Positions 26,483 to 63,300 of a stretch of DNA of 64,000 nucleotides are shown piece after piece. Under the pieces are notes generated by a model that saw nothing but the letters and a program-made list of their open reading frames with translations, was not told the DNA's origin and did no database searches. Numbering within the stretch: the first letter of the stretch is position 1; each line of letters opens with the position of its first letter. This DNA comes from Macrostomum hystrix (Eukaryota; Animalia; Platyhelminthes), in the NCBI GenBank assembly GCA_950097015.1, contig CATNEN010000039.1, positions 15,872,001 through 15,936,000 on the forward strand, read 5' to 3'. The position numbers were made by a program, and so were the translations under genes.

Positions 26483-26655
26483 CTAGCAATGCGAGCTGCT
26501 AACGAGATGCACAAAGAACTCCAGCCGGTCACGCGTCTCCAGGCCGCAGCGGCTGCACTTGAACGGATTCTCGCAGCCGTGGCAGGCCATGTGGAGGTCA
26601 AACATCAGCGGCTCCTTGAACACGATGCCGCAGAAACTGCACTCGCCCCAGCGAA

Positions 26656-26706
<51 letters not shown>

Positions 26707-27475: not shown

Positions 27476-27524
27476 CTGCGTGGAGCCTGAGGGTTCGGGC
27501 AGCAACGGCCGTTGGATTATGACA

Positions 27525-34150: not shown

Positions 34151-34674
34151 TATTTACCGTTTTTTAGGCTAGACCAGATTCACTTTCTCGGGATTTTTTC
34201 AGACAATAATCAGTCTGAAGTGGTTGACGATAAATTAAATTTATTCATTGCATTGTTTTATCATTGCTATTGCAAATTTCTTACAAATTGTTTTAATAAT
34301 GAATCGTGTACTGTTTGTTAGTATTTACGAGTTCGTAAGTTCGACAAAAAGATACAACGTTTCTTTAGTCGCTATATTGACAGTTCTTACTGAACTTAAG
34401 CACTAGATTTGGTCATTGATGGCTTTTCTCGTCTATGACCTGATTTTAGCTACTATGGTCGCATTTTTTTAAACAAAGAATAAGAGAAACCTTAGGCCTC
34501 TTTAAAAGAAGCGCCTAATCTTGACACCTTGGCTTTCGGAAAATCAGTTAGTCACGCAATCGATCTTTTTATTATAATTATAAAATGCGATCAGTGTCGC
34601 TGAAAATATAATACAGGAGGGTCTTAGCAACGGGTGTTTGGGAGCGGCTGCGAATCCGTGGCGACGGTAAGACC

Positions 34675-37600
34675 ATCTCTCCCTTGTCTAATCTTTCCCG
34701 TAACTGATCTCTCCTGTGTGTTATCTCTCCTGTGTCTCATCTCTCCTGTGTCTCATCTCTCCTGTGTGTTATCTCTCCTGTGTCTCATCTCTCCTGTGTG
34801 TTATCTCTCCTGTGTCTCATCTCTCCTGTGTGTTATCTCTCCTGTGTCTCATCTCTCCCGTGTCTCATCTCTCCCGTGTCTCATCTCTCCTGTGTGTTAT
34901 CTCTCCTGTGTCTCATCTCTCCCGTGTCTCATCTCTCCCGTGTCTCATCTCTCCTGTGTCTCATCTCTCCTGTGTCTCATCTCTCCCGTGTGTTATCTCT
35001 CCTGTGTCTCATCTCTCCCGTGTGTTATCTCTCCTGTGTCTCATCTCTCCTGTGTCTCATCTCTCCTGTGTCTCATCTCTCCCGTGTGTTATCTCTCCCT
35101 TGTCTCATCTCTCCTGTGTGTTATCTCTCCCTTGTCTCATCTCTCCTGTGTCTCATCTCTCCTGTGTCTCATCTCTCCTGTGTCTCATCTCTCCTGTGTC
35201 TCATCTCTCCCGTGTGTTATCTCTCCTGTGTCTCATCTCTCCTGTGTCTCATCTCTCCTGTGTCTCATCTCTCCCGTGTGTTATCTCTCCTGTGTCTCAT
35301 CTCTCCTGTGTGTTATCTCTCCTGTGTCTCATCTCTCCTGTGTCTCATCTCTCCTGTGTGTTATCTCTCCTGTGTCTCATCTCTCCTGTGTGTTATCTCT
35401 CCTGTGTCTCATCTCTCCTGTGTGTTATCTCTCCTGTGTCTCATCTCTCCCGTGTCTCATCTCTCCCGTGTCTCATCTCTCCTGTGTGTTATCTCTCCTG
35501 TGTCTCATCTCTCCCGTGTCTCATCTCTCCCGTGTCTCATCTCTCCTGTGTGTTATCTCTCCTGTGTCTCATCTCTCCTGTGTGTTATCTCTCCTGTGTC
35601 TCATCTCTCCTGTGTGTTATCTCTCCTGTGTCTCATCTCTCCTGTGTCTCATCTCTCCTGTGTGTTATCTCTCCCTTGTCTCATCTCTCCTGTGTGTTAT
35701 CTCTCCCTTGTCTCATCTCTCCTGTGTGTTATCTCTCCCTTGTCTCATCTCTCCTGTGTCTCATCTCTCCTGTGTCTCATCTCTCCTGTGTCTCATCTCT
35801 CCTGTGTCTCATCTCTCCCGTGTGTTATCTCTCCTGTGTCTCATCTCTCCCGTGTGTTATCTCTCCTGTGTCTCATCTCTCCTGTGTCTCATCTCTCCTG
35901 TGTCTCATCTCTCCTGTGTGTTATCTCTCCCTTGTCTCATCTCTCCTGTGTGTTATCTCTCCCTTGTCTCATCTCTCCTGTGTCTCATCTCTCCTGTGTC
36001 TCATCTCTCCTGTGTCTCATCTCTCCTGTGTCTCATCTCTCCTGTGTGTTATCTCTCCTGTGTCTCATCTCTCCTGTGTCTCATCTCTCCTGTGTCTCAT
36101 CTCTCCCGTGTGTTATCTCTCCTGTGTCTCATCTCTCCTGTGTCTCATCTCTCCCTTGTCTAATCTTTCCCGTAACTAATCTCTCCTGTGTGTTATCTCT
36201 CCCTTGTCTCATCTCTCCTGTGTCTCATCTCTCCTGTGTCTCATCTCTCCTGTGTCTCATCTCTCCTGTGTCTCATCTCTCCCGTGTGTTATCTCTCCTG
36301 TGTCTCATCTCTCCTGTGTCTCATCTCTCCTGTGTCTCATCTCTCCCGTGTGTTATCTCTCCTGTGTCTCATCTCTCCTGTGTCTCATCTCTCCCTTGTC
36401 TAATCTTTCCCGTAACTAATCTCTCCTGTGTGTTATCTCTCCCTTGTCTCATCTCTCCTGTGTCTCATCTCTCCTGTGTCTCATCTCTCCTGTGTCTCAT
36501 CTCTCCTGTGTCTCATCTCTCCCGTGTGTTATCTCTCCTGTGTCTCATCTCTCCTGTGTCTCATCTCTCCTGTGTCTCATCTCTCCCGTGTGTTATCTCT
36601 CCTGTGTCTCATCTCTCCTGTGTCTCATCTCTCCCTTGTCTAATCTTTCCCGTAACTAATCTCTCCTGTGTGTTATCTCTCCTGTGTGTTATCTCTCCTG
36701 TGTCTCATCTCTCCTGTGTGTTATCTCTCCTGTGTCTCATCTCTCCTGTGTCTCATCTCTCCTGTGTGTTATCTCTCCTGTGTCTCATCTCTCCTGTGTG
36801 TTATCTCTCCTGTGTCTCATCTCTCCTGTGTGTTATCTCTCCTGTGTCTCATCTCTCCCGTGTCTCATCTCTCCCGTGTCTCATCTCTCCTGTGTGTTAT
36901 CTCTCCTGTGTCTCATCTCTCCCGTGTCTCATCTCTCCCGTGTCTCATCTCTCCTGTGTGTTATCTCTCCTGTGTCTCATCTCTCCTGTGTGTTATCTCT
37001 CCTGTGTCTCATCTCTCCTGTGTGTTATCTCTCCTGTGTCTCATCTCTCCTGTGTCTCATCTCTCCTGTGTCTCATCTCTCCTGTGTCTCATCTCTCCTG
37101 TGTCTCATCTCTCCCTTGTCTAATCTTTCCCGTAACTAATCTCTCCTGTGTGTTATCTCTCCTGTGTGTTATCTCTCCTGTGTCTCATCTCTCCTGTGTG
37201 TTATCTCTCCTGTGTCTCATCTCTCCTGTGTCTCATCTCTCCTGTGTGTTATCTCTCCTGTGTCTCATCTCTCCTGTGTGTTATCTCTCCTGTGTCTCAT
37301 CTCTCCTGTGTGTTATCTCTCCTGTGTCTCATCTCTCCCGTGTCTCATCTCTCCCGTGTCTCATCTCTCCTGTGTGTTATCTCTCCTGTGTCTCATCTCT
37401 CCCGTGTCTCATCTCTCCCGTGTCTCATCTCTCCTGTGTGTTATCTCTCCTGTGTCTCATCTCTCCCGTGTCTCATCTCTCCCGTGTCTCATCTCTCCTG
37501 TATGTTATCTCTCCTGTGTCTCATCTCTCCTGTGTGTTATCTCTCCTGTGTGTTATCTCTCCTGTGTCTCATCTCTCCTGTGTCTCATCTCTCCTGTGTG

Positions 37601-40600
37601 TTATCTCTCCTGTGTGTTATCTCTCCTGTGTCTCATCTCTCCTGTGTGTTATCTCTCCTGTGTGTTATCTCTCCTGTGTCTCATCTCTCCTGTGTCTCAT
37701 CTCTCCTGTGTGTTATCTCTCCTGTGTGTTATCTCTCCTGTGTCTCATCTCTCCTGTGTCTCATCTCTCCTGTGTGTTATCTCTCCTGTGTGTTATCTCT
37801 CCTGTGTGTTATCTCTCCTGTGTCTCATCTCTCCTGTGTGTTATCTCTCCTGTGTCTCATCTCTCCCGTGTCTCATCTCTCCCGTGTCTCATCTCTCCTG
37901 TGTGTTATCTCTCCTGTGTCTCATCTCTCCTGTGTGTTATCTCTCCTGTGTCTCATCTCTCCTGTGTGTTATCTCTCCTGTGTCTCATCTCTCCCGTGTC
38001 TCATCTCTCCCGTGTCTCATCTCTCCTGTGTGTTATCTCTCCTGTGTCTCATCTCTCCTGTGTCTCATCTCTCCTGTGTCTCATCTCTCCTGTGTCTCAT
38101 CTCTCCTGTGTGTTATCTCTCCTGTGTCTCATCTCTCCTGTGTGTTATCTCTCCTGTGTGTTATCTCTCCTGTGTCTCATCTCTCCCGTGTCTCATCTCT
38201 CCTGTGTGTTATCTCTCCTGTGTGTTATCTCTCCTGTGTCTCATCTCTCCTGTGTGTTATCTCTCCTGTGTGTTATCTCTCCTGTGTCTCATCTCTCCTG
38301 TGTCTCATCTCTCCTGTGTGTTATCTCTCCTGTGTGTTATCTCTCCTGTGTCTCATCTCTCCTGTGTGTTATCTCTCCTGTGTGTTATCTCTCCTGTGTC
38401 TCATCTCTCCTGTGTCTCATCTCTCCTGTGTGTTATCTCTCCTGTGTGTTATCTCTCCTGTGTCTCATCTCTCCTGTGTGTTATCTCTCCTGTGTGTTAT
38501 CTCTCCTGTGTCTCATCTCTCCTGTGTGTTATCTCTCCTGTGTCTCATCTCTCCTGTGTCTCATCTCTCCTGTGTCTCATCTCTCCTGTGTCTCATCTCT
38601 CCTGTGTGTTATCTCTCCTGTGTCTCATCTCTCCTGTGTCTCATCTCTCCTGTGTCTCATCTCTCCTGTGTCTCATCTCTCCCGTGTCTCATCTCTCCCT
38701 TGTCTAATCTTTCCCGTAACTAATCTCTCCTGTGTGTTATCTCTCCCTTGTCTCATCTCTCCTGTGTCTCATCTCTCCTGTGTCTCATCTCTCCTGTGTC
38801 TCATCTCTCCTGTGTCTCATCTCTCCCGTGTCTCATCTCTCCTGTGTCTCATCTCTCCTGTGTCTCATCTCTCCTGTGTCTCATCTCTCCCGTGTGTTAT
38901 CTCTCCTGTGTCTCATCTCTCCTGTGTCTCATCTCTCCCTTGTCTAATCTTTCCCGTAACTAATCTCTCCTGTGTGTTATCTCTCCCTTGTCTCATCTCT
39001 CCTGTGTCTCATCTCTCCTGTGTCTCATCTCTCCTGTGTCTCATCTCTCCTGTGTCTCATCTCTCCCGTGTGTTATCTCTCCTGTGTCTCATCTCTCCTG
39101 TGTCTCATCTCTCCTGTGTCTCATCTCTCCCGTGTGTTATCTCTCCTGTGTCTCATCTCTCCTGTGTCTCATCTCTCCCTTGTCTAATCTTTCCCGTAAC
39201 TAATCTCTCCTGTGTGTTATCTCTCCTGTGTGTTATCTCTCCTGTGTCTCATCTCTCCTGTGTGTTATCTCTCCTGTGTCTCATCTCTCCTGTGTCTCAT
39301 CTCTCCTGTGTGTTATCTCTCCTGTGTCTCATCTCTCCTGTGTGTTATCTCTCCTGTGTCTCATCTCTCCTGTGTGTTATTTCTCCTGTGTCTCATCTCT
39401 CCCGTGTCTCATCTCTCCCGTGTCTCATCTCTCCTGTGTGTTATCTCTCCTGTGTCTCATCTCTCCCGTGTCTCATCTCTCCCGTGTCTCATCTCTCCTG
39501 TGTGTTATCTCTCCTGTGTCTCATCTCTCCTGTGTGTTATCTCTCCTGTGTCTCATCTCTCCTGTGTGTTATCTCTCCTGTGTCTCATCTCTCCTGTGTC
39601 TCATCTCTCCTGTGTCTCATCTCTCCTGTGTCTCATCTCTCCTGTGTCTCATCTCTCCCTTGTCTAATCTTTCCCGTAACTAATCTCTCCTGTGTGTTAT
39701 CTCTCCTGTGTGTTATCTCTCCTGTGTCTCATCTCTCCTGTGTGTTATCTCTCCTGTGTCTCATCTCTCCTGTGTCTCATCTCTCCTGTGTGTTATCTCT
39801 CCTGTGTCTCATCTCTCCTGTGTGTTATCTCTCCTGTGTCTCATCTCTCCTGTGTGTTATCTCTCCTGTGTCTCATCTCTCCCGTGTCTCATCTCTCCCG
39901 TGTCTCATCTCTCCTGTGTGTTATCTCTCCTGTGTCTCATCTCTCCCGTGTCTCATCTCTCCCGTGTCTCATCTCTCCTGTGTGTTATCTCTCCTGTGTC
40001 TCATCTCTCCCGTGTCTCATCTCTCCCGTGTCTCATCTCTCCTGTATGTTATCTCTCCTGTGTCTCATCTCTCCTGTGTGTTATCTCTCCTGTGTGTTAT
40101 CTCTCCTGTGTCTCATCTCTCCTGTGTCTCATCTCTCCTGTGTGTTATCTCTCCTGTGTGTTATCTCTCCTGTGTCTCATCTCTCCTGTGTGTTATCTCT
40201 CCTGTGTGTTATCTCTCCTGTGTCTCATCTCTCCTGTGTCTCATCTCTCCTGTGTGTTATCTCTCCTGTGTGTTATCTCTCCTGTGTCTCATCTCTCCTG
40301 TGTCTCATCTCTCCTGTGTGTTATCTCTCCTGTGTGTTATCTCTCCTGTGTGTTATCTCTCCTGTGTCTCATCTCTCCTGTGTGTTATCTCTCCTGTGTC
40401 TCATCTCTCCCGTGTCTCATCTCTCCCGTGTCTCATCTCTCCTGTGTGTTATCTCTCCTGTGTCTCATCTCTCCTGTGTGTTATCTCTCCTGTGTCTCAT
40501 CTCTCCTGTGTGTTATCTCTCCTGTGTCTCATCTCTCCCGTGTCTCATCTCTCCCGTGTCTCATCTCTCCTGTGTGTTATCTCTCCTGTGTCTCATCTCT

Positions 40601-43600
40601 CCTGTGTCTCATCTCTCCTGTGTCTCATCTCTCCTGTGTCTCATCTCTCCTGTGTGTTATCTCTCCTGTGTCTCATCTCTCCTGTGTGTTATCTCTCCTG
40701 TGTGTTATCTCTCCTGTGTCTCATCTCTCCCGTGTCTCATCTCTCCTGTGTGTTATCTCTCCTGTGTGTTATCTCTCCTGTGTCTCATCTCTCCTGTGTG
40801 TTATCTCTCCTGTGTGTTATCTCTCCTGTGTCTCATCTCTCCTGTGTCTCATCTCTCCTGTGTGTTATCTCTCCTGTGTGTTATCTCTCCTGTGTCTCAT
40901 CTCTCCTGTGTGTTATCTCTCCTGTGTGTTATCTCTCCTGTGTCTCATCTCTCCTGTGTCTCATCTCTCCTGTGTCTCATCTCTCCTGTGTGTTATCTCT
41001 CCTGTGTCTCATCTCTCCTGTGTGTTATCTCTCCTGTGTGTTATCTCTCCTGTGTCTCATCTCTCCTGTGTGTTATCTCTCCTGTGTCTCATCTCTCCTG
41101 TGTCTCATCTCTCCTGTGTCTCATCTCTCCTGTGTCTCATCTCTCCTGTGTGTTATCTCTCCTGTGTCTCATCTCTCCTGTGTCTCATCTCTCCTGTGTC
41201 TCATCTCTCCTGTGTCTCATCTCTCCCGTGTCTCATCTCTCCCTTGTCTAATCTTTCCCGTAACTAATCTCTCCTGTGTGTTATCTCTCCTGTGTGTTAT
41301 CTCTCCTGTGTCTCATCTCTCCTGTGTGTTATCTCTCCTGTGTGTTATCTCTCCTGTGTCTCATCTCTCCTGTGTGTTATCTCTCCTGTGTCTCATCTCT
41401 CCTGTGTCTCATCTCTCCTGTGTCTCATCTCTCCTGTGTCTCATCTCTCCTGTGTGTTATCTCTCCTGTGTCTCATCTCTCCTGTGTCTCATCTCTCCTG
41501 TGTCTCATCTCTCCTGTGTCTCATCTCTCCCGTGTCTCATCTCTCCCTTGTCTAAGCTTTCCCGTAACTAATCTCTCCTGTGTGTTATCTCTCCTGTGTG
41601 TTATCTCTCCTGTGTCTCATCTCTCCTGTGTGTTATCTCTCCTGTGTGTTATCTCTCCTGTGTCTCATCTCTCCTGTGTGTTATCTCTCCTGTGTCTCAT
41701 CTCTCCTGTGTCTCATCTCTCCTGTGTCTCATCTCTCCTGTGTCTCATCTCTCCTGTGTGTTATCTCTCCTGTGTCTCATCTCTCCTGTGTCTCATCTCT
41801 CCTGTGTCTCATCTCTCCTGTGTCTCATCTCTCCCGTGTCTCATCTCTCCCTTGTCTAATCTTTCCCGTAACTAATCTCTCCTGTGTGTTATCTCTCCTG
41901 TGTGTTATCTCTCCTGTGTCTCATCTCTCCTGTGTGTTATCTCTCCTGTGTGTTATCTCTCCTGTGTCTCATCTCTCCTGTGTGTTATCTCTCCTGTGTC
42001 TCATCTCTCCTGTGTCTCATCTCTCCTGTGTCTCATCTCTCCTGTGTCTCATCTCTCCTGTGTGTTATCTCTCCTGTGTCTCATCTCTCCTGTGTCTCAT
42101 CTCTCCTGTGTCTCATCTCTCCTGTGTCTCATCTCTCCCGTGTCTCATCTCTCCCTTGTCTAAGCTTTCCCGTAACTAATCTCTCCTGTGTGTTATCTCT
42201 CCTGTGTGTTATCTCTCCTGTGTCTCATCTCTCCTGTGTGTTATCTCTCCTGTGTGTTATCTCTCCTGTGTCTCATCTCTCCTGTGTGTTATCTCTCCTG
42301 TGTCTCATCTCTCCTGTGTCTCATCTCTCCTGTGTCTCATCTCTCCTGTGTCTCATCTCTCCTGTGTGTTATCTCTCCTGTGTCTCATCTCTCCTGTGTC
42401 TCATCTCTCCTGTGTCTCATCTCTCCTGTGTCTCATCTCTCCCGTGTCTCATCTCTCCCTTGTCTAATCTTTCCCGTAACTAATCTCTCCTGTGTGTTAT
42501 CTCTCCTGTGTGTTATCTCTCCTGTGTCTCATCTCTCCTGTGTGTTATCTCTCCTGTGTGTTATCTCTCCTGTGTCTCATCTCTCCTGTGTGTTATCTCT
42601 CCTGTGTCTCATCTCTCCTGTGTCTCATCTCTCCTGTGTCTCATCTCTCCTGTGTCTCATCTCTCCTGTGTGTTATCTCTCCTGTGTCTCATCTCTCCTG
42701 TGTCTCATCTCTCCTGTGTCTCATCTCTCCTGTGTCTCATCTCTCCCTTGTCTAATCTTTCCCGTAACTAATCTCTCCTGTGTGTTATCTCTCCTGTGTC
42801 TCATCTCTCCTGTGTCTCATCTCTCCTGTGTCTCATCTCTCCTGTGTCTCATCTCTCCTGTGTCTCATCTCTCCCTTGTCTAATCTTTCCCGTAACTAAT
42901 CTCTCCCGTGTCTCATCTCTCCTGTGTCTCATCTCTCCTGTGTCTCATCTCTCCTGTGTCTCATCTCTCCTGTGTCTCATCTCTCCTGTGTCTCATCTCT
43001 CCTGTGTCTCATCTCTCCCTTGTCTAATCTTTCCCTTGTCTAATCTTTCCCTTGTCTAATCTTTCCCTTGTCTAATCTTTCCCTTGTCTAATCTTTCCCT
43101 TGTCTAATCTTTCCCTTGTCTAATCTCTCCCGTAACTAATCTCTCCTGTGTGTTATCTCTCCTGTGTCTCATCTCTCCTGTGTCTCATCTCTCCTGTGTC
43201 TCATCTCTCCTGTGTGTTATCTCTCCTGTGTCTCATCTCTCCTGTGTCTCATCTCTCCTGTGTCTCATCTCTCCTGTGTGTTATCTCTCCTGTGTCTCAT
43301 CTCTCCTGTGTCTCATCTCTCCTGTGTGTTATCTCTCCTGTGTCTCATCTCTCCTGTGTCTCATCTCTCCTGTGTGTTATCTCTCCTGTGTCTCATCTCT
43401 CCTGTGTCTCATCTCTCCTGTGTCTCATCTCTCCTGTGTGTTATCTCTCCTGTGTCTCATCTCTCCTGTGTCTCATCTCTCCTGTGTCTCATCTCTCCTG
43501 TGTCTCATCTCTCCTGTGTCTGATCTCTCCTGTGTGTTATCTCTCCTGTGTCTCATCTCTCCTGTGTGTTATCTCTCCTGTGTCTCATCTCTCCTGTGTC

Positions 43601-44430
43601 TCATCTCTCCTGTGTGTTATCTCTCCTGTGTCTCATCTCTCCTGTGTCTCATCTCTCCTGTGTCTCATCTCTCCTGTGTCTCATCTCTCCTGTGTCTCAT
43701 CTCTCCCGTGTCTCATCTCTCCCGTGTCTCATCTCTCCCTTGTCTAATCTTTCCCGTAACTAATCTCTCCTGTGTGTTATCTCTCCTGTGTCTCATCTCT
43801 CCTGTGTCTCATCTCTCCTGTGTGTTATCTCTCCTGTGTCTCATCTCTCCTGTGTCTCATCTCTCCTGTGTCTCATCTCTCCTGTGTCTCATCTCTCCTG
43901 TGTCTCATCTCTCCCGTGTCTCATCTCTCCCGTGTCTCATCTCTCCCTTGTCTAATCTTTCCCGTAACTAATCTCTCCTGTGTGTTATCTCTCCTGTGTG
44001 TTATCTCTCCTGTGTCTCATCTCTCCCGTGTCTCATCTCTCCCGTGTCTCATCTATCCCGCGTGCCATCTCTCCCGTGTCTCATCTCTCCCGTGTCTCAT
44101 CTCTCCCGTGTCTCATCTCTCCCGTGTCTCATCTATCCCGCGTGCCATCTCTCCCGTGTCTCATCTCTCCCGTGTCTCATCTCTCCCGTGTCTCATCTCT
44201 CCCGTGTCTCATCTCTCCCGTGTGTCATCTCTCCCGTGTCTCATCTCTCCCGTGTCTCATCCCTCCCGTGTCTCATCTCTCCCGTGTGTCATCTCTCCCG
44301 TGTGTCATCTCTCCCGTGTCTCATCTCTCCCGTGTGTCATCTCTCCCGTGTCTCATCTATCCCGCGTGCCATCTCTCCCGTGTCTCATCTCTCCTGTGTC
44401 TCATCTCTCCCGTGTGTCATCTCTCCTGTC
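34675..44430 (+). repeat. 16-bp satellite (atctctcctgtgtctc / atctctcctgtgtgtt)n, ~9.8 kb, with higher-order structure
   Basis: Tandem array seen directly, punctuated by the variant block cttgtctaatctttcccgtaactaatc. Confidence 0.98.
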
Positions 44431-47400
44431 TCTACCTTTCTGGCCCAGCCTATCATATTTTACAGTTAAATATACGGGGCCCCTGTCCGGGCTTGTATTT
44501 GCTTTGATTTTTCGTGATTTTTATTTTTCCCATTAATTTATTTTAATTAGACACCTGAATAAGGACTAAGTGGCATTTATACAATGAAACTTATGCAAGT
44601 GAACAAACATATTAACCCGAATATGTCCGGTATAGTGCATATTGGAGCTGTTACAAGTTACACCGGTAATAAGCTCCTGAGACAATGCAATGCCCACATG
44701 CATGCAGCATTATAAAAAGAAATAATTAGACCAAGCATTTAAAAAAATGCCGAAAGTTATCCTGACAAGTTAAAAATCGAATTTCATAAAAGTTTTTGCC
44801 TCCATTAGGGCTTCTGGGAGCGAGTTTGCGTTTAATCCCTGATTGCCAGGAAATCTTCGCGTTAATTACTATGTCGCCAGTTGCTCATAGAAGCACACAT
44901 GTTCGTTAGGTGAAGGTGGCGTATAAAGCTCAGCTGCATTGCTGAAAGCTTTGCTCTCACGTTTCCTCTCCCAGAAGAATGGGATTCTCAAAATTCTTTC
45001 TGATTTATTCGCCCACGTCTTAAAATGAATTAGCAAAAATGGAAGGATTATGCTTTTAGTCACCTGAGCGTCTCTTGCTGTCGAGGCGGCGAGGTCTCGA
45101 CAGCGAAACTTGCTTCTAGTAGTTTTTGCAGCTTTTGCAAAAATTAGACACCGGCCGTCTAGAGCTTTCATGTGGCTTTATTAACTTTTCCTTTTTTAGT
45201 GATATATGCAGCTGCATGGCTTCCGTGGATAAACTGTTGAAACTCTTCAGGGGGAACTATTTGTGGATGAGTCCACAACTCTTATTAGACGTCATTAGTT
45301 TTGCTTTTACCAGCTTCCATATGTGCCCTTTCTATATAATCAAAGCGATTAATATAATTATATCAAATAATTTTAAAATAATCAATGGCTTTAGGCTGGC
45401 TGGCTAATGTTGTAGACCAATTGCATAGATTCCCAACGATAAACTTATTCGTTCTTTAGATCCTCTTACAAAAGCCTTCGACGGTGCTACCTATTTTAGT
45501 TCTAAGTAGTACCGTTTTTAGTTTAAGTAGTTTGCGCTGCGCTGCGTGCAGCGCACTTCCAATGCAAACTAATATCCAAGTAATAGCTATTCAAGTGAAT
45601 ACTAGTCTTCACAGCATAATCGTAACTCTTAAAAAATCTAAGCAACTATCAGAAGAAACAAAACCTGATTTCGCATCCCAGATCCCAGAACAGCTGTTTG
45701 GTCGTTGTTACTATGGCGCGAATTTAAGTTCTTTGATTTTTTTCTTAGAACATTGTTGCTGTAAATCTGAATTTGGATTTTGGAACTTGGCAGCTTAATT
45801 GAATTTTTATGTTTTTTGCAACTGTAAATTCAAGTACTTCAAATGTTATAGCCAACATGTAACTGTGTAATTGTTATAATAAAAAACCATGTGGCAAAAC
45901 TCGTATGATAAGAAATGATATCAGGATTATTTATTTTATATTTTTTTACACCACACCAGGTAATTCTATTCTGCTCTACTAACTAGCTGGTCTAGTTATT
46001 TGTAATAGGTCCTTGCTAGCCTGTTACAGTGAAACATTTGTAATTTTTAATTTCCAATCTGATTTATAATAAGCTAACTGTGACAGAGTAGCTAGGGTGG
46101 CATGGGGCCTAATTGCTAGCTAGGGCTTTATATAGGCCATAATGTGCCTAATTGCCTAGTTGAGTAAAAATTTAGCTATTCTTTTAAATAATATACTATT
46201 TGGCCATCGTTGCTTAGTATAACTAGTTGCTTATTTTATTATTTAGCAATACAATATTAGATGACAACAAAATTAGAAAGTTTCTACCCTAATGGGTATA
46301 AAAAAGAGCCAAGATGTGCTAAATATATTCAAGCCATTGACCTAAAAGTGAGTCTAACTAACTGAAAAAATAGAAGCCTAAGGCAAAGCACATATTAGGC
46401 ATTCTAAAACATTGCTTTAGTAGATTCTTAGCTTAAAATTGTGCTATATAGAACTTTTGATATGTTCAACAACCAAAATCTTGACAATATTAATGCCAAC
46501 TTGAGGATAGAGACTTAAATGTCCCTGAGTGTGTGTATTACAGTAAATTAGTATGTGACAGCTCATTGTTGTAATATATTTATATTTACTTTTAGAATAT
46601 TTTCTTAGTTAAGAATTCCCTGATTCCTTGAACTAAGCTCTAGAAATATAATTTAATGCAAGAACAGATAGGGTAATGTATCATCAACCAAACAAGAATG
46701 TGTATTTTTTTAACTTCAAACCTAAGCTACAGATTTTCTATTTAAGATATGATGATAAATCAAAAGCCAAGTTATAGAAAACAGTTACATCTTTCTAAAA
46801 AGTATCTGCTTTTGCTATTTTATCAAATAGAAAAAGTTATTCCTGCTTTTTATCTAAAAGTGAACAATTATTTTCATGTATCTTCAAACCAAACAGAGAA
46901 TTTGATGTTTGGTTTTACAATTTGAGTGAGTGGTTTAATCTTATTTTAAGGAGTGAACTATCATGAATTATGTCATTTGAAAGCATTTTTCATGCTCTAT
47001 CGATAACTACATTTATGGTCATTTAATTGGCAAGCAACCACATACAATCTTTGTCTAAAGTACTGAAAAAACATACTGAAAAAATGTTTTTAAAAAGTAT
47101 AAAAATTTCTACTGAAACATCAATATCTTTCTTTCCTCTTAATGCTTCATTGCACATCATGCCTCAGCTTGTAGATAATTTCTTCTTTTAAATTAGTTGT
47201 TCTGTGAAACACATAGCTTGTTTCTGTCTTTCACGAGACCAAGGAAGAAGTCAAAATTCTTGTTCGGTTTTGAAGATACACTGTTCCGTTGATGATACAT
47301 TATCCTACTGTCTAAACAAAATGGTTAATTAATTTCGATGTAGCTGTATATGCGTCGTAATTTTAAATCCTGAAATGATTTCTGGGAGATTGTGCCACTC

Positions 47401-47502: not shown

Positions 47503-49714
47503 ATGGCGGACTGGAGCAGCTGGCTGCAGGATGAGGTATCGGCCATTGGTCACGCGCAGCGCAATGGCCAGCTGAATTGTCCAGCGAATCCAGAGCCGGG
47601 CAGTCCAGATGTTCCGCTGCTGCAGCTGGACTTGATGCCGCTGCTTAGCCAGACGCCGCTTAGTCGCGAATTCATCGCCCACGATTGTCGCCTATGCTCG
47701 GCCAGATTTCCTAGCCTGTTAACCCTGCTGCGTCACCTAGACTGTGCTCACAGTAAGGGACGGAAAAGGCTGCGTGCTAAACGAGGCGCCGCCGCTGCTG
47801 CTGCGGCTGCCGCGGCGGCTGCGGCTGCGGCTGCGGCTGCGGCGGCTCTGATGGCTGATTCGCCAACACTGACCCAAGCCGCTCTGCTAGCAAATTCGCC
47901 TCTGTTATTGACTAGTCCACCCTCGACTCCTGGAAATATTGGCGGAGTCGGCGTTGGTGGCAGCGGCGGCTTATCAGGCGGAGTAAAGAAGCAGAAAACT
48001 ACTGCCGGCTCGTCAAAGAACTCGGCTTCAAGAGTCGTCGCTGTTGACGACGATGAAGAAGACCTGGACGCCAACGCCGACGATGTTGAAGGGGACGAAG
48101 AGGAAGGCGGGGTAGAGGAGGAAGAGGATGTTGACGTTGACGTTGGAAACGGTCACGGCAGCAGCAGCGGTGGTATCGGCGCCAGCCCAATGGCTGCAGA
48201 GGACTCCCAGGTAAGCTCATTAATTCCAGATCCTTAAATTCCTAGATCCTCAAATCATTCAGACACTGCGTCCATTCCGCAGACTCCCCGGCTGCCCGGT
48301 CTTCTAGAAGAGGCACCTGTCAGCGTGTCACTCGAACCGGAGGAGGACGCCGTGCCGGTGGTTCGAATCCGCGAAGAGGACGACTCCTCTGGCGGCGCGG
48401 CCGCGTCTGTGGCGCAAACCGGAGGCGGCGACAGTCTGGGTGGCGACTCTTCCTCCGGCTTTGGCCAGCATCGAGTGCAGCCGCATCACTTGGCCATGTC
48501 GCCGCTGAGTGAGGTCGCTTCCTTGTCGTCGATTACCTCGCAGCAACAGCAGCAGCAGCAGCGTCACAGTCATCAGCACAAGATGCGCGTCCTGCCTTTG
48601 CGCGATCGCGCATTCAACCCAGACATTCACTGCGGCGTCGTGGCAGCCGATTCCGGGCAGCGCTGCGTCCGTTCGCTGACGTGCAAGAAGCACAGTCTGC
48701 GAGATAGGCGCGCTGTGCCAGGACGCACTAGGCCATTTGACGTCTTGTTGCAGGCCAGCCGCAACCTCAAAGCCACCAATGCCACGTCGTCGCAGACATC
48801 CCAGGCTGTTCAACAGTCCAGCGGCGCCTGTTCTGTATCGTCGGCGCCGCCTCCGAATCTGTCCTTAGCGTCGGCGACCTCTTCGTCTACGCTGGCCTCC
48901 GTTAGCAGTTCGCCGCAGTTCTCGTCGCTTTCATCGTCTGCGCAGCAAAAGCAGCAGCATCAGCAGCAGTCAGTGTTCCGCAAGCAGCAGGTGATGCTTA
49001 TTCCAACTGCTAGCGCACTTTTTTCGGCGTCGTCATCATCTCCAGCGTCGCCACCGTCGACTGCGCCAGGCAGTGTTGATGTGAGTTTTATCTACGGTTA
49101 TTTTGTGTAAATTTGCCAAGATAAGCCTACCATGTCCATTGTGTGCCATGTAGATATTCCATCTCTCGCAGGTGTACTCTTCCGACGAGGATTTCCTGGA
49201 ATTTCCGACGCCAGCTCCCACACCTGCGCCGTTGCTTTCTGAGCAGCAGCAGCAGCCAGTTTCAGAGGCTGGCATTGGCGCCCAATTTCGTTGCCTGGGC
49301 GCGCCGCAGCCGCTTCTGCTGTTGCGTCGCAACCGATTTGCAGCGAATTCAAATTCAACAGCTCCCGCCTATACTACTGCCGCTGGCTCAGTAGATGGTT
49401 GCGCTAGCAGCGGCGGGACCTTGGCTCTGCTGGCCTGGGCTCGACGGCGCACCCTGACTCCCATGGCCGGCATCGGAGCTCATTGTCGGAACCGCCTGGC
49501 GCAGCACAGGACCGTCCTGCAGCCGCCACAGCAGCAGCATCATCATTCCATGCTGCAGCACAGCTATTATCAGCAACAGCAGCAACAGCAGAATTTTATT
49601 GCTTCGCCGTTAGTGCTTGGCGGTGGTGGTTCGAATCCGCAACTGTCAGCCTCGGCTATTGTTAAACAACAACAGCAGCAGCAGCAGCTAGCGCATCAGG
49701 CTAAGCAGCGATGA
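47503..49714 (+). CDS. ATXN7: Ataxin-7-like protein (SAGA DUB-module anchor, Sgf73/ATXN7 family)
   Basis: Exons 47503-48210, 48283-49080 and 49172-49714 (all phase 0, GT-AG). N-terminal zinc finger CRLCSARF...[10 protein letters not shown]7 domain [14 protein letters not shown]...[29 protein letters not shown]. Low-complexity A, D/E, S and Q tracts. Confidence 0.88.
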
Positions 49715-54373: not shown

Positions 54374-57300
54374 ATGAGAGCCAAATATTTGCTAACTTTT
54401 ATTTTAACTGGTGCAATCGTACAAGGTGCTTTTGTCCATAGAATGAGCATCAGCAGCAGCAGTTGGCGCTTTTCCGAGGACCAGCGGCAAACCATGGCAG
54501 TAACCAGACTGTCGGAACGCCTACTGGGACACGATGCATCCAGATTTACATTCAGTGTGACTCCAGATGCCCAGCTGCCCAGGCATCAAGCTCTGGTAAT
54601 GCAGACTGTGGTATATTAGCTGTCCTAGGTTTGTTAGAGTAGAAACGCTGCGTTCTTTTTCAAATAGTTATAATCTCACAAGGGAACATGTTTGTGTATT
54701 TGAGGAGCACACTTACATTGACATTGCTTTAGTTCAACTTAGCAATAAAATAGGTATCATTTGCGTGGGAGAGACTAGATCCAAATGCGAGAGACTAGAT
54801 CTAGATGGGAGAGACTAGATCTAGATGGGAGAGAATAGATCCAGATGGGAGAGAATAGATCCAGATGGGAGAGAATAGATCTATATATTTATAGTGAAAT
54901 TCTGGATTTCACTCCTATTCTCCTATTCTAGATGGGAGAGAATAGATCTAGATGGGAGAGAATAGATCCAGATGGGAGAGACTAGATCTAGATGGGAGAG
55001 AATAGATCCAGATGGGAGAGAATAGATCCGGATGGGAGAGACTGGATCCAGATGGGAGAGAATAGATCTAGATGGGAGAGAATAGATCCAGATAGGAGAG
55101 AATAGATCAAGATGGGAGAGAATAGATCAAGATGGGAGAGACTGGATATAGATGGGAGAGTCTGGATCTAGATGGGAGAGAATAGATCCAGATAGGAGAG
55201 AATAGATCCAGATGGGAGAGAATAGATCAAGATGGGAGAGACTGGATATAGATGGGAGAGTCTGGATCTAGATGGGAGAGACTAGATCCAGATGGGAGAG
55301 ACTAGATCTAGATGGGAGAGAATAGATCCAGATGGGAGAGAATAGATCCGGATGGGAGAGACTGGATCCAGATGGGAGAGAATAGATCTAGATGGGAGAG
55401 AATAGATCCAGATAGGAGAGAATAGATCCAGATGGGAGAGACTGGATATAGATGGGAGAGTCTGGATCTAGATGGGAGAGACTAGATCCAGATGGGAGAG
55501 ACTAGATCCAGATGGGAGAGATAAGTTTACATTTAACATTATTCTCAATGATGGAATACACTCGAAAGCATCCCCCTGGTCGCAAGGTAAAAAACACGGG
55601 GCCCAACAGTGTGAGTATCACTGGCAATTCCGGAGTTGCCGCCGCATGGGCCCTTCATCGCTACCTGACTGAGCACTGCTCAGCACTGGTGGCCTGGTCC
55701 GCCGCCCAGGTAGCCCTGCCGCCCGATCACCTGCCCATGGTCCATCAAGGTCAACTGAACCTATCATCATTGGACACGTACACAGCCATGCCGAATGTGG
55801 TTACATTTTCCTATTCCTATGTCTGGTGGAACTTCTCAGATTGGGAACGCCACATCGACTGGATGGCCCTGCACGGCGTGAACCTGGCCTATTCGCTAAC
55901 CGGCTTTGAACAGGTGTTCGCCAACGCCATGCTCAGTTTTGGCCTAACAGCAGCCGATCTGGAGACCTATTTTCCTGGGCCTGCCTTTCTGGCCTGGTGA
56001 GGATTTGAAAGTTGCTGGGCTTATAAATCTGATGTTAAGTAATAAATAAATAAATTTATGATAATTAATGTCAGGTGTTACTTCTGACTCTCGCAAAAGT
56101 GAAGCCCCTGTGGGCGGTCAACGGTCAATTTTTTTGGGGCGCAGCCGCGGAGAGAAGGCTTGGGGGCTTGTCGTGCAATTTACGCCCTTGTAGGCCAACC
56201 TCAAAGGCACAAAGGCAAAGGAGAGTGTACACTGCCTGACGATGTAAAAGTCAGGGTAGATGTACACACCCTGTTTAAGCGTACGGTGTGCGTGTGTGCT
56301 TAAGAGTCAGCGAAATGGGCAGAATTGCCTCCTCGCTGGTTGCGGGTTAGTGTCACCGAATGATGTGCCATTGCGCGCAACACTCCTGCAAGCATTATTA
56401 TTATTGCTTAGTGATCAGAGTGATGGACTTCAGATGCTCCGCGCAATAGCTGCGGCTGTGCCTCACAGACCCTGCAGATATTATCATTATCAAACAGGCA
56501 AAAGGGACAGAACATCCGTGTCTTATACTAATGGACTTTGCCTAATTGTGCTTAGACTATCTTTTACTCGGCATTATTTACAGGGGCCGCATGGGTAACC
56601 TGAAGTCCTGGGGCGGCCCTTTGCCAGACTTCTGGCGCCGGAACCAAGCCGACCTGCAGCGCCGAATTCTTGAAAGGATGACGTCACTGGGCATGACGCC
56701 CGTGCTGCAGGGCTTTTCTGGCATGGTCCCTGACGCATTTGTTCAGTAAGTTTTAACAAATATTTGTTCATCGTCAAATATTTTTTTGTTTTGAGCTACG
56801 TAGCTTTGTGTTAAAACTTTTTCCAACTTCTATATAATTGGAAATAGTTGGATGGGGCTGTTCAGTCCATGGACCACCTTCAATTATCCCAGCTAATGTA
56901 GTTAAGTGTCTTCCAAAGGAACACAAATACTCGTAGTTTCAGTGGACTATGGAGTTCAGTGAACTCCAAATCTTAAAGTTGTGAGTCTGACAGTCTAATC
57001 TAGGCTACAGTCCTTGTTGAGCAACATGAGCTAAGCTATGTGATTTCTGTGAATTTCCAATATTGAAGGACGTTTTTCAAAAAGGCAGTCAATCAATTAG
57101 TCTAAAAATGAATTTGTTTAAACTAAACTCAAACGAATTGCAAATGGTAGCATGGCGGGTCAAGCGCAAGGCAGTTCCAAAATAGGAAAATACGAGTATT
57201 GACCAATGCTATTTCTATCGGTAAAGTTAATTCCTAGTAACAGTTCAAATACCATTTAAATCGATGTGCACTTAGATTAGATTAGCTAATCGCTTTTAAA

Positions 57301-60300
57301 TTGGCAGCTGTATCAGCAAATAGCTAGCCATTGTTAATGTTTAAGCTCCCTTCAATATTCATTGGTAGACGCTAATTGACCGCTCCGAACTGAGTGGTCA
57401 ATTAACCAAAAACGTTTGCCCTAAGTGGCACACCTGCTCAGCAGTCAAACAAGAAGCAGCGGTATAAATCTGCGAAATAAAACTGGCGTCCTGAGCAGTC
57501 TGAAATCCAGAGTTCGACCTTCTTTGCGGTGATCTGAGCTTTGCTACTAGCCCAAACCTGCTGTTCTTATGAAGGCCACCGCTCTCTGCCTGCTGTGGCT
57601 GGCCACTGCGGCATCCGTGCAGTGCCAGTACACCAGCTATGTCTCAGCACTGCCGTCCGCCAACTGCTATCCGAGTCACAACTCCGGCAGCTACCCGTCC
57701 TACTCAAGGATGATCACCTGGACCACTCACTACCCGACCAGCTCCTGGTATCCGACCAGCTCCTGGTATCCGACCAGCTCCTGGTATCCGACCAGCTCCT
57801 GGTATCCGACCAGCTCCTGGTATCCGACCAGCTCCTGGTATCCGACCAGCTCCTGGTACCCGACCAGCTCCTGGTATCCGACCAGCTCCTGGTACCCGAC
57901 CAGCTCCTGGTATCCGAGCCACTCGTGGCGTCCATCTAGCTCCTGGTACCCGACCAGCTCCTGGTATCCGAGCCACTCGTGGCGTCCATCTAGCTCCTGG
58001 TACCCGACCAGCTCCTGGTATCCGAGCCACTCGTGGCGTCCATCTAGCTCCTGGTACCCGACCAGCTCCTGGTATCCGAGCCACTCGTGGCGTCCATCTA
58101 GCTCCTGGTACCCGACCAGCTCCTGGTATCCAACCAGCTCCTGGTACCCGACCAGCTCGTGGTATCCGAGCCACTCGTGGCGTCCATCTAGCTCCTGGTA
58201 TCCGACCAGCTCCTGGTATCCTAGCCACTCGTGGCATCCGACCAGCTCGTGGTATCCGAGCCACTCGTGGCGTCCATCTAGCTCCTGGTATCCGACCAGC
58301 TCCTGGTATCCGACCAGCTCCTGGTATCCGAGCCACTCGTGGCGTCCATCTAGCTCCTGGTATCCGACCAGCTCGTGGTATCCGAGCCACTCGTGGCGTC
58401 CATCTAGCTCCTGGTATCCGACCAGCTCCTGGTATCCAAGCCACTCGTGGCGTCCATCTAGCTCCTGGTATCCGACCAGCTCGTGGTATCCGACCAGCTC
58501 CTGGTATCCGAGCCACTCGTGGCGTCCATCTAGCTCCTGGTATCCGACCAGCTCGTGGTATCCGAGCCACTCGTGGCGTCCATCTAGCTCCTGGTATCCG
58601 ACCAGCTCCTGGTATCCGAGCCACTCGTGGCGTCCATCTAGCTCCTGGTATCCGACCAGCTCGTGGTATCCGACCAGCTCCTGGTATCCGAGCCACTCGT
58701 GGCGTCCATCTAGCTCCTGGTATCCGACCAGCTCGTGGTATCCGAGCCACTCGTGGCGTCCATCTAGCTCCTGGTATCCGACCAGCTCCTGGTATCCGAG
58801 CCACTCGTGGCGTCCGTCAAGCTCCTGGTACCCCAGCCACTCGTGGTCCGGATACGCCCGTTCGAGCTCCTACAGGCCATCAAGTCGCTATTATTACTAG
58901 GTCTAAGACCGCACCAGCTCTGATGCAACCCTGGATTTTCTGATTTCGCCCATGACCTGAAATATTTATTTAATAAACTTTGGTGGTGGAATCAGCCAAA
59001 TTATGTCACAACTGCTAACAACTACCTGCCAGGAAGAAAAAGAATGCGAGAAATTCTCCTCTGACCTGTCAACAAAAATATATCTATTTGTACAAGCTTG
59101 TGTGGCCATTGTTCTGTTTAGATAAGTCTATGAATGAAAGCGGTGCATATAAATGATCTCGATGGCTTCATTGTTTTTTTTTTTTATCGAATCTTAAGCG
59201 AATCGAACAATTTTACAGGTTGCAAAAGTGTGTGTAGAAATGAATTTTTAATCAGAATTTTATAAGGGCTCATTCATTTGGAGTGGGCTTGTCGGGCAAT
59301 TTATACTAACTAGGGCCGACACTTATGTGTTCTTGTGTTCTCAACTGCTCTTTGGGTGTTCTTTAGTATAAATGTGTGTTCTCAAGGAGTCAGAGCACGG
59401 GGAATAAAGGTACGAGGTAAATTTTATAAAATTTCTACACATTTTCAGAAAGTACCCAAGCGTCAACTACACGCGGTTGTCCGATTGGAACAACTTTGGA
59501 CAGAACTATTCCCAGTGCGTACTCATCTCATACTCAGTTTTTCGGGGATGCCATTGATGCAAACTATTGATGCCATTAATTCAATTTCCAGGGTTTACTT
59601 TGTTAATCCGAAAGACCCGATGTTTGTCAACCTGTCGGTGGCCATCATTAGAGAGGTGAACTCAAAATTGTTGTTTTATCATTGGTTCACTTTTTGGAAC
59701 AAAACTTTTTATCAGGCAAGTTAAGCGTTGTCCGCACTGTCGTGGGTTGGGTGTCAACTCACATCTTGCTCCTGGCATCCGACAAGCTCCTGGTACCCAT
59801 CTAGCTCCTGATACCCATCTAGCTCCAGGTACCCATCTAGCTCCAGGTACCCATCTAGCTCCTGATACTCATCTAGCTCCAGGTACCCATCTAGCTCCTG
59901 ATACCCATCTAGCTCCAGGTACCCATCTAGCTCCAGGTACCCATCTAGCTCCTGATACCCATCTAGCTCCAGGTACCCATCTAGCTCCAGGTACCCATCT
60001 AGCTCCTGATACTCATCTAGCTCCTGGCATCCGACAAGCTCCTAGTACCCATCTAGCTCCTGGTACCCATCTAGCTCCTGGTACCCATCTAGCTCCAGGT
60101 ACCCATCTAGCTCCAGGTACCCATCTAGCTCCAGGTATTCTGCAAGCTCCAGGTATTCTGCAAGCTCCAGGTACCCATCTAGCTCCAGGTATTCTGCAAG
60201 CTCCAGGTACCCATCTAGCTCCAGGTATTCTGCAAGCTCCAGGTACCCATCTAGCTCCAGGTATTCTGCAAGCTCCAGGTACCCATCTAGCTCCAGGTAT

Positions 60301-63300
60301 TCTGCAAGCTCCTGGTACCCATCGAGCTCCTGGTACCCATCGAGCTCCAGGTACCCATCTAGCTCCAGGTATTCTGCAAGCTCCTGGTACCCATCGAGCT
60401 CCTGGTACCCATCGAGCTCCAGGTACCCATCTAGCTCCAGGTATTCTGCAAGCTCCTGGTACCCATCGAGCTCCTGGTACCCATCGAGCTCCAGGTACCC
60501 ATCTAGCTGAGTTGTTGGGTGTCCACTCTGTGATTTTTTCTTTGGGTGTCCACTTACTTATTTCTTTGAAATTGAAATATCTTAAAATGTAATTCGCAGA
60601 ATGTGAAGCTTTTCGGCCCAGTTACTCATCACTACGCCATGGACCCATTCAACGAGATTCTTCCGTCCGATAGGTGCGCGAAATTTCGTTTTTTGTCAAC
60701 GTCAGTTTAGTTCAATTTAGTCGTGATTTTTGACAAAAAACTAGTAATTTCTGTCAGAACTAGCATGTTAAAATAAAAAGGAGTTAAGCGAAATAACAAG
60801 CATTTTTCCAATTTCCTCAAATTTTAGCGATCCCGCGTTCATCAGTGCGGTGAGTGCGGCGATTCTCAATGGCTTCTTAACAGCCGATCCGGCTGGAATT
60901 TGGTGAGTTTGATTCGCGCCGCACCACCTTAATGGGAAATCCATTCAACTCGCTGATTGGATAGAAAATTTGAGGGGAATTCTTTGCTAGCAGTGTTTCT
61001 ATTTTTAGAAACTGAAAACGTAAATTGAATAAATCAAAAAACCAGAAAACTGAAAAATCATAGGGTACTGCAGAGTTGGTTTTTGAACAACGCTGCCGAC
61101 TTTTGGACCCTGGACCGAGCCAAGGCGTTCTTTAATCCAATTGATCCGGTAAGCAGTTTTTGGATTTACTATTGACTCAAATTTTGCTGAAATTCAACAT
61201 CAGAGTACCCATTGCTTGTACTTTGCTTAGTACCGGCACTTAATCTTGCAACAGTCGAAACAGAGAACTTTTTGATAGTAAAATTTGGGAATACGTAGAT
61301 TGGGGATAATGAAGATTGGGGATAATGAAGATTGGGGATAATGAAGATTGGGGATAATGAAGATTGGGGATAATGAAGATTGGGGATAATGAAGATTGGG
61401 GGATAATCAAGATTGGGGATAATGAAGATTGGTAATATGAAGATCGCTAATAGTGAAGTTTGGAAAACTTGGTCGTGTCTCTTAGGCGTACATTTTCTGA
61501 CATGCTTTTCGAAGCCCTGCTATGAAGCCAACTTCCTGCTTCTAGAACCACCTGCTAGTGATGGAGCTGTGGGGCGAGACAGTCGACCTACCGCAGAACT
61601 TGAACGGATTTTTCGGGCACAATTTCGTTTGGACTGCGTTGCACAACTTCGGCGGCAACAATGCCATGTACGGAATGCTGGAACAATTCAACCAGCACGG
61701 ACCTTTCGCGTTGCGCCGACAGTTTCCTAGAAACATGCTTGGCACAGGCGTCATGCCCGAGGGCATCGGGCAGAACGAAGTGGTGTACGAGCTGCTCATG
61801 GAGTTCAATAAGCTAGCTCAGCAGCCTGAGCAGCTCAACCTATGGATTCGGGATTATGCGAGGAGGCGATATGGACTAGAAAACTCGATCCTGCAGGACG
61901 CTTGGGAAGATCTATTGGTGAGCAGGTCTCGCTTGCATTGTTGCAGCTGTTGATAGCGGCGGCTGCTGTGCTGTTGATTGCATTGCTGTGCTGTTGATTG
62001 CATTGCTGTGCTGATTATTGCATTGCTGTACTATTGATTGCATTGCTGTGCTGTTGATTGCATTGCTGTGCTGTTGATTGCATTGCTGTGCTGTTGATTG
62101 CATTGCTGTGCTGTTGATTGCATTGCTGTGCTAGGTTGATTGCATTGCTGTGCTGTTGATTGCATTGCTGTGCTGTTGATTGCATTGCTGTGCTGTTGAT
62201 TGCATTGCTGTGCTAGGTTGATTGCATTGCTGTGCTGATGACTGCAGCTGCTGCTGTGCTGATGGTTGCAGCTGCTGCTGTGCTGATGGTTGCAGCTGCT
62301 GCTGTGCTGATGGTTGCAGCTGCTGCTGTGCTGATGGTTGCAGCTGCTGCTGTGCTGATGGTTGCAGCTGCTGCTGTGCTGATGGTTGCAGCTGCTGCTG
62401 TGCTGATGGTTGCAGCTGCTGCTGTGCTGATGACTGCAGCTGCTGCTGTGCTGATGGTTGCAGCTGCTGCTGTGCTGATGACTGCAGCTGCTGCTGTGCT
62501 GTTGATTGTAGCTGCTGCTGTGCTGTTGATTGCAGCAGCTGCTGTGCTGTTGATTGCAGCGGCTGTTGTGCTGTTGATGGGAGCTGCTGCTGTGCTGATG
62601 ATTTCAGCTACGATAGTGCTGCTACTAAATGGAAAACTAAAAGTTTCTTAGTAAACAGCGGGCTAAATGTCGCAGTTGATTACGAATGCTCAAACTCCAG
62701 GCCACAGTGTACCAGACTCCCAGGGATGGCATGCTCGTGCCGGTGCTTGTTCTGCGCCCGTCTCTATCGTTGAGCGAGACTGCAGACTACAATGCCACTC
62801 TACTTGAGGTCGCATGGAAGAAGCTCATCTTGATCAACGACACCGACAATGTCATGCTGAAGTAAGCTTAAATCGTGAGCACGATTTTTTAAATCTTAGA
62901 TTCTAGAGATTTTTAGAAAAGAACAAACTTTTACAAACAAAAAAGAAAATAAATTTTGCTATGGCCGAATGAAGATTCTGAAGCTTATGGAAAACAACAA
63001 ACTAGCTAATTTTATTAATAGACAAATAAAAGCAATAAACTTGATTAAAATTGACAAACGAGAAAAATGAGAAAACGGAGCAGGGGCTGGAAATTAATGA
63101 AAAAAAAATTCACTGAGAAAAATAACGGTACTTAAAATAAAAAACTGACAATTGTTTCTTAGAAAAAATGATATTCATAAAATTCGGAAATTTAATATAA
63201 CTTTTTATAACTTTATAACCGCATATAGTATATGTATATAATATTATATAATATAACGTATTTAATATAATATATTAAATATATAAATATAAATTATATA

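Follow-up and report, generated by a model that had tools for sequence, protein, structure and literature searches.

A 64,000-nucleotide stretch of the genome of the flatworm Macrostomum hystrix (assembly GCA_950097015.1, contig CATNEN010000039.1, positions 15,872,001 to 15,936,000; below called the window, with positions counted from its first letter and strands given as + or -) carries a tandem-repeat open reading frame (ORF) within an intron of a NAGLU gene, and this ORF is with high probability a real, expressed gene. The repeat array is transcribed from the locus at a level well above that of its host, its tryptophan (Trp) codons are all intact whereas a decayed, non-coding twin array nearby has lost most of them, and the variants among its units lend moderate support to constraint on the coding frame. 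The whole chain of reasoning, from the gene up to a secreted low-complexity material protein with Trp at every sixth residue, is considered rather probable.

The repeat gene and its protein

The ORF (57569-58900, +) encodes 443 amino acids and is the sole ATG-started ORF across the array. A TATA box (TATAAA, 57463-57468, +) was read directly 34 nucleotides 5' of an initiator-like A at 57497, which lies within GCAGTC (57495-57500, +) and marks the approximate predicted transcription start, and a poly(A) signal (AATAAA, 58972-58977) is followed by a GT-rich element at 58980-58989 (+), such that the promoter-like, initiator, AATAAA, and GT-rich signals are canonically spaced around the ORF. A complete unit with its TATA box at 57463, ATG at 57569, stop at 58900, and AATAAA at 58972 had been described in an earlier note made from the sequence alone, and direct reading bore out these coordinates. 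The coding part comprises the start codon with a signal-peptide-like leader of residues 1-19 (57569-57625, by a heuristic sequence reading), a unique N-terminal region that is single copy in the genome and includes the worn in-frame units YPSHNS and YPSYSR (57626-57730), the array of 62 units of 18 nucleotides encoding W-terminated hexapeptides and made of words unique to the locus (57731-58846), and worn in-frame C-terminal units with the stop codon (58847-58900), all on +. The array units are organized in 54-nucleotide (A-B-C) and 180-nucleotide higher-order repeats, and the worn units at both array edges keep the frame. Two further frames are open through the array, neither of which has a listed ORF of at least 80 amino acids.

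The 62 hexapeptides are uninterrupted and have Trp as the sixth residue throughout (29 YPTSSW, 17 YPSHSW, 15 RPSSSW, and 1 HPTSSW), making exact the earlier estimate of about 62. Over the whole ORF, Ser contributes 34.8%, Pro 14.9%, Trp 14.4%, Tyr 12.6%, and His 4.5% of residues, and Gly is represented by two residues. The protein is without Asp, Glu, and Phe, its single Lys is residue 2 in the leader, Cys is found at residues 7, 19, and 33, and the C-terminus reads RYYY, in agreement with the previous description of a chain with no Asp or Glu, one Cys after the predicted cleavage, and an RYYY end. The mature chain of approximately 51 kDa has 63 Trp, 56 Tyr, 153 Ser, 66 Pro, 34 Thr, 20 His, and 19 Arg and no Lys, being 28% aromatic and 60% Ser/Thr/Pro, with a net charge of about +20 at pH 7 and about +37 at pH 5, and with every repeat Arg preceding Pro. 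The leader displays Lys2, then residues 3-16 as a hydrophobic core (Kyte-Doolittle means of 1.6-2.2 over 9 residues), and ends in small residues, V-Q-C, before Gln20. This corresponds to the n/h/c layout of a signal peptide by a heuristic reading, and fits the signal-peptide-like N-terminus that had been noted before. No second hydrophobic segment was identified in the protein beyond the leader, and secretion via this leader is probable.

The host gene was recognized from two exons upstream of the repeat gene, at 55586-55995 (+; spliced RNA contigs of runs X7 and X8, Pfam NAGLU_N and NAGLU) and at 56583-56745 (+; joined to the former by a GT..AG junction, 55995>56583, in RNA contigs), whose joined frame reads as NAGLU. 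An intron of about 3.8 kb follows, from 56746 to about 60600 (+), with the next NAGLU-like exon starting from about 60601 and the NAGLU domain resuming at 61558-61953 (Pfam). From the NAGLU-like flanking ORFs, the spliced exons, and the next exon near 60601, it therefore follows that the repeat gene is nested in the same orientation within a 3.8-kb intron of a gene for a lysosomal enzyme. The earlier suggestion of a nested and apparently intronless unit was supported by the promoter-like and poly(A) signals of its own, with the absence of introns predicted from sequence signals.

A 13-nucleotide inverted repeat, TAATTGACCGCTC / GAGTGGTCAATTA, lies at 57373-57404, 60-90 bp upstream of the TATA box, and its TAATTG cores are homeodomain-like. 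It occurs a single time in the genome and is a possible transcription-factor site, and as a genome pattern search found no second locus with this promoter palindrome, it gives no sign of a co-regulated gene set. The preceding host intron contains a dispersed repeat (56098-56502) whose RNA-contig depths in X7 and X8 add up to thousands and come from many variant contigs with loose ends. This repeat resembles an expressed multi-copy element, and its ORF motif GLVSPNDV is present again at 663-1046.

Transcription of the array and constraint on its frame

Part of the gene stretch was present in ten sequencing runs, and in four runs contigs were placed on 55450-57850, where a gap in placement proves nothing by itself. 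Runs X7 and X8 gave host contigs of 2263 and 2490 nucleotides that were spliced across the GT..AG intron with 0 mismatches, and almost no contigs over the unique intron, with depth 0 over most of it including all 480 bases before the array. Because of the spliced host contigs and the almost empty unique intron, both runs can be regarded as RNA-type data from this species. Many short contigs were found in both runs over the array start. One of them (X7 record 19, 76 nucleotides, depth 210.4) shows four differences when aligned at 57778-57845, including a G>A at 57808, and a loose end, GCCACTCG, and is exactly identical to window positions 58102-58177, the sole 76-mer that fits. Each 31-mer of this contig is present once in the gene, and its depth of 210 is for this reason a per-copy depth, compared with 21.7 in that run for the exons of the host. 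Within the 220-Mb genome, words of the repeat are confined to the locus. From the per-copy depth and the absence of these words elsewhere in the genome, the array is therefore transcribed from this locus at about ten times the host mRNA level. Background from the host intron was considered as the source of the RNA signal and rejected, as the unique intron is mostly at depth 0 and the contig of single-copy words is at depth 210.

Signal was also present in runs X1, X2, and X4, labelled organism A, in which 11-25% of the words sampled from the gene stretch (57400-59100) were found. In X1, the one of these three runs with contig placement, neither the host exons nor the initial A-type units were covered by a contig. 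This signal could come from an orthologue with another unit order, from a tissue-restricted sample, or from carry-over of an abundant transcript between libraries.

Constraint on the reading frame was assessed with a variant network built from DNA alone using the 12 distinct 18-mers of the array, since unit classes defined by translation would make the test circular. The spanning network contains 18 changes, with 11 of the 18 at codon position 3 (P = 0.014). Among the single-step changes, six of seven are synonymous in the ORF frame, compared with 0-1 for the remaining + frames and no more than four in a minus frame, while the three main unit types differ from one another mainly by non-synonymous changes. 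The variant pattern thus offers moderate support for frame-specific constraint. The claim of the earlier note that unit variants are mostly at synonymous third positions held for the network and for the single-step changes and proved weaker than stated, given the non-synonymous differences between the main types.

A second line of evidence came from a decayed, non-coding twin array of 40 units (59794-60513, +), located 0.9 kb 3' of the gene, with the consensus TACCCATCTAGCTCCAGG (YPSSSR). In the frame of the gene, this array has TGG in 9 of its 40 units, AGG in 24, and 6 stops. On its 5' side lies a relic HPTSSW unit, and the 18-nucleotide slice CCATCTAGCTCCTGGTAC, which spans a C-to-A unit junction, has four exact copies in the gene, from which the twin array appears to derive from such a junction slice of the gene. 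The contrast between the arrays in retention of the Trp codon is plain, as TGG is intact in 62 of 62 units of the gene and in 9 of 40 units of the twin (Fisher P of 2e-18, a value that is overstated since the units are non-independent). The length of the open frame was given no weight in these arguments: a long open frame alone is worthless as gene evidence in the M. hystrix genome because many minisatellites here yield long ORFs.

Relatives and comparison with known systems

Genome searches covered 220,453,370 bases in 42 contigs. Paralogue searches with the whole protein, the N-terminal 54 amino acids, the 5' part, and the promoter retrieved this locus alone, and the other matches to the protein were unrelated 18-bp minisatellites. 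The protein itself is absent from the protein collections that were searched. Only two matches, both short and convergent, came from a word-indexed search of 5.8 billion proteins, and the N-terminal 70 amino acids had no match in the protein search. In a phmmer search of 1.84 billion representatives, 152 low-complexity matches were obtained, of which the best scored 91 bits and none fell below 1e-30, and the longest run of six-spaced Trp among the 150 best of these was 14 units compared with 62 here. No family or domain was assigned by Pfam in the 443 amino acids, the ESM Atlas returned a match of 0.75 to an arthropod 'per-hexamer repeat protein' that is below the useful range, and the literature search found no record of the peptide motifs in the papers open to searching and no relevant report of Trp-rich proteins in Macrostomum or in rhabdites. 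The earlier statement that no family could be recognized was upheld by Pfam, the protein searches, and the literature, and the search for paralogs and orthologs with the unique termini that it had proposed found the N-terminal peptide in single copy in the genome and returned an empty result for proteins. This M. hystrix gene is likely to be lineage-restricted, judging from these sequence comparisons.

The nearest functional analogue for a secreted material based on Trp is foot protein 1 of the green mussel Perna viridis (Pvfp-1), which is composed of decapeptide repeats with Lys. Pvfp-1 is a Trp-based adhesive with Thr O-glycosylation and Pro/Thr-rich repeats (Zhao et al. 2009, as summarised in PMC4275877), and its Trp residues are C-mannosylated and 7-hydroxylated (PMC4275877). 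A Trp content of about one sixth, which had been called extreme, is indeed extreme and has a precedent in this protein (PMC4275877). Both proteins are built of tandem repeats, with Trp instead of 3,4-dihydroxyphenylalanine (DOPA) as the key aromatic residue in Pvfp-1, and they differ in that the searches found no sequence relationship and that the repeats here are hexapeptides, contain no Lys, and belong to another phylum. Short tandem repeats that are both aromatic and cationic, with a basic charge, are a trait of the mussel-foot type and are present here, and no match indicating homology with mussel foot proteins was found in the protein searches or Pfam. The likeness to adhesive repeat proteins of invertebrates is thus one of working principle by analogy and not of family membership.

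Precursors of the flatworm eggshell, such as Fasciola vitelline protein B and Schistosoma p14 and p48, are Tyr/DOPA-rich and quinone-tanned, with compositions rich in Gly, Tyr, and Lys, and Trp is not known to be characteristic of them. The repeat protein resembles them in being repetitive, Tyr-rich (12.6%), His-containing (4.5%), and suited to oxidative cross-linking, and differs in having 2 Gly, no Lys, high Trp, and no homologue found among them. Ser/Thr/Pro tandem repeats are shared with mucins, whereas the end domains (VWD, C8, CK, SEA) and the membrane anchor of mucins were not found here. The same W-x-P-(S/T)-x-(S/T)-W grammar is present in stalks from unrelated eukaryotes, with a local identity of up to 60-67%. 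Such stalks have 4-14 units within larger proteins, compared with 62 units that make up nearly the whole protein here. Protein P0001 of Dermamoeba algensis (EukProt) carries a WYPTSSW/WYPTQSW stalk that links its extracellular portion to a membrane anchor, and the resemblance to this amoeba stalk is most simply viewed as convergent low-complexity sequence. The most fitting class for the protein is that of lineage-restricted, probably secreted repeat proteins, among which its Trp periodicity is extreme.

The adhesion proteins of Macrostomum, ap1 (5,407 amino acids) and ap2 (14,794 amino acids), known as Mlig-ap1 and Mlig-ap2 and with counterparts in M. hystrix, are secreted and repeat-rich and have EGF, lectin, vWD, TIL, TSP-1, and LDL domains, with ap1 partly polycationic (Lys/Arg-rich) and ap2 O-glycosylated (PMC8621496). 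In contrast, the protein described here has 443 amino acids, no Pfam domain, no Lys, and a Trp-based repeat, and displays no similarity to either. A role as the main tail-plate glue was rejected, as the main temporary glue of Macrostomum, also in M. hystrix, is assigned to ap1 and ap2, which together explain the adhesive vesicles (PMC8621496), and a main-adhesive role is unlikely.

Proposed material role, rival readings, and significance

In the proposed model, a TATA/initiator promoter in the NAGLU intron would drive an mRNA of about 1.5 kb at approximately tenfold the abundance of the host mRNA in RNA data of whole-animal type. A dedicated promoter is suggested because the array RNA exceeds the host exons about tenfold in depth and the preceding 480 bases are empty. 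The 19-residue leader would route the product into the secretory pathway, and the mature chain would be an extended, probably O-glycosylated, Ser/Thr/Pro-rich polycation of sticker-and-spacer type, whose repeat grammar places a W-Y or W-R pair at each six residues, separated by a P-(S/T)-x-S spacer. Self-association and binding to polyanionic glycans would be expected since the chain has no acidic residue and a charge of about +20, and condensation in secretory granules may take place by pi-pi and cation-pi contacts or on such glycans. His could confer a pH sensitivity suiting acidic granule packing and a change of state on release, and Tyr and Trp might act as sites for oxidative cross-linking or for Pvfp-1-like modification. 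The protein would then be a cohesive or structural part of a secreted material, with candidate sites in epidermal granules such as rhabdites, in the cement or shell of eggs, and in male accessory secretion. The function as a glue, eggshell, or granule material put forward in the earlier note is plausible from composition alone. A bolder proposal is that the protein is an abundant component of an unrecognized class of secreted material based on periodic Trp and not on DOPA or cysteine, in which Trp residues would be aligned along an extended polyproline II (PPII)-like or beta-ladder chain, perhaps be hydroxylated or glycosylated in the manner of Pvfp-1, and bring about condensation and cohesion; this is regarded as improbable.

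Several results weigh against a functional secreted protein encoded by an expressed gene. No orthologues or paralogues were found in the searches above, and there is hence no support from conservation. No contigs covered 57232-57717, including the promoter, 5' untranslated region, and leader, in any of the four runs, the shares found in the runs (0.36-0.40) match the repeat fraction of the distinct 31-mers (329/914), and the RNA contigs may comprise the array only. The missing 5' part might reflect a dead end of 150-230 nucleotides that was clipped by the assembler beside repeat words 6-14 times deeper, or alternatively a clipped short bridge to a spliced leader; short-read assemblies break repeat-rich transcripts in a study of Macrostomum adhesion (PMC8621496). 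The array contigs carry neither strand nor transcript ends, and the strand of the gene, the start and end of its RNA, and the absence of introns are predicted from sequence signals. The statistics on constraint come from few events in a recently homogenized array with non-independent units, and five unit variants share one position that belongs to a CpG. Unrelated 18-bp minisatellites form dozens of arrays in the genome with ORFs of 300-1200 amino acids, including one with 12.7% Trp. A single-sequence AlphaFold2 model (pLDDT 43.7, pTM 0.29), with an isolated beta-bridge per Trp, is unreliable, too weak to be informative, and was not used.

These observations bear most directly on the idea of a transcribed minisatellite with a fortuitous ORF, the RNA of which would be non-coding or spurious and would yield no functional protein. 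Minisatellite makes up more than half of the window, other arrays have ORFs of up to 1,200 amino acids, among them the array with 12.7% Trp, two other frames of the repeat array are open, the related array 0.9 kb downstream is clearly non-coding, and RNA contigs did not extend to the unique 5' part of the coding sequence. Such a sequence would nevertheless leave several features unaccounted for, as the ATG, the signal-like leader, and the spacing of TATA box, initiator, and poly(A) signal are found only for the Trp frame, the variants are synonymous in this frame alone, the 62 Trp codons are intact where the twin lost most, and the RNA stands at about ten times the host exons after 480 unique intron bases without signal. 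A fortuitous ORF is on balance quite unlikely, and a real, expressed gene is retained as the preferred reading.

The remaining alternatives accept a protein and differ from the proposed cohesive or structural material in its role. A fast-evolving reproductive secretion, from the prostate or seminal fluid, the female antrum, or cement glands, with repeats under sexual selection and no function as structural body material, is unlikely, and composition cannot separate it from a granule or material role, with which it can overlap. In its favor are the orphan status of the protein in very large protein sets, the recent expansion of the array by 54-nucleotide and 180-nucleotide higher-order repeats, and the fast turnover of genes expressed in the tail region of Macrostomum (PMC10468722). 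Reproduction-related genes of this genus, especially those of the tail region, turn over fast and are often without detectable homologues (PMC10468722), a reported pattern that the fast turnover and missing homologues described here fit. Lower still is the probability given to a protein of mucin type that would serve as a surface coat or lubricant, with heavy O-glycosylation and with aromatic residues that are incidental. The mature chain is 60% Ser, Thr, and Pro, and a signal-like leader precedes its short tandem repeats. The W-x-P-(S/T)-x-(S/T)-W stalk of D. algensis P0001 stands between an extracellular CAP-like part and an anchor. Pfam, however, identified none of the end domains of mucins, whether Cys-rich, VWD, or other, and retention of Trp in 62 of 62 units beside Tyr or Arg points to the aromatic and cationic residues as the selected feature. 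A defensive polycation, namely an antimicrobial or anti-predator secretion rich in Trp, Arg, His, and Pro, has Trp/Pro-rich host-defence peptides as its chemical comparison and would agree with the net charge of about +20, 15% Trp, 15% Pro, and lack of acidic residues. It is nonetheless very unlikely in view of the low charge density of about one Arg per 18 residues in a chain that is mainly Ser, the absence of dibasic or other processing sites, and the position of each repeat Arg before Pro.

Beyond the NAGLU locus, the window is rich in further repeats and genes. Minisatellite accounts for more than half of its length, for example at 9672-13641, 20963-23785, and 30146-34126, and an array at 34674-44433 spans 9.8 kb with a 304-bp higher-order unit. 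Many of the arrays within 8444-55521 have ORFs of 500-2279 amino acids. Four further sites with candidate genes were identified by eye: a DEP/RGS-type (RGS7/EGL-10-like) gene at 5503-7993 (+), the C-terminal tail of which contains about ten (V/A)(T/A)PWE copies and thus a further Trp-periodic stretch; two tandem RING-finger paralogues with a common N-terminal half at 16878-17309 and 20188-20916 (+); a C2H2 zinc-finger gene resembling hunchback at 26483-27505 (-), which has long runs of poly-Gln and poly-Pro; and, at 47503-49714 (+), a gene that resembles ataxin-7 and contains a poly-Ala run.

If the protein is made and secreted, its 62 consecutive W-x5 units would make it the most regular Trp-periodic natural polypeptide in the searches. 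It would then offer a natural model for condensation of aromatic sticker-and-spacer type and for Trp-based cohesion, the latter mainly known from one mussel protein. The presence in one intron of a coding tandem repeat and of a satellite that appears to derive from it bears on the birth and decay of genes in a minisatellite-rich genome. Trypsin proteomics would largely miss such a protein because it has no Lys outside the leader and its repeat Arg is always before Pro, and short-read assembly breaks the gene too, so this protein may be an overlooked abundant component of Macrostomum secretion.

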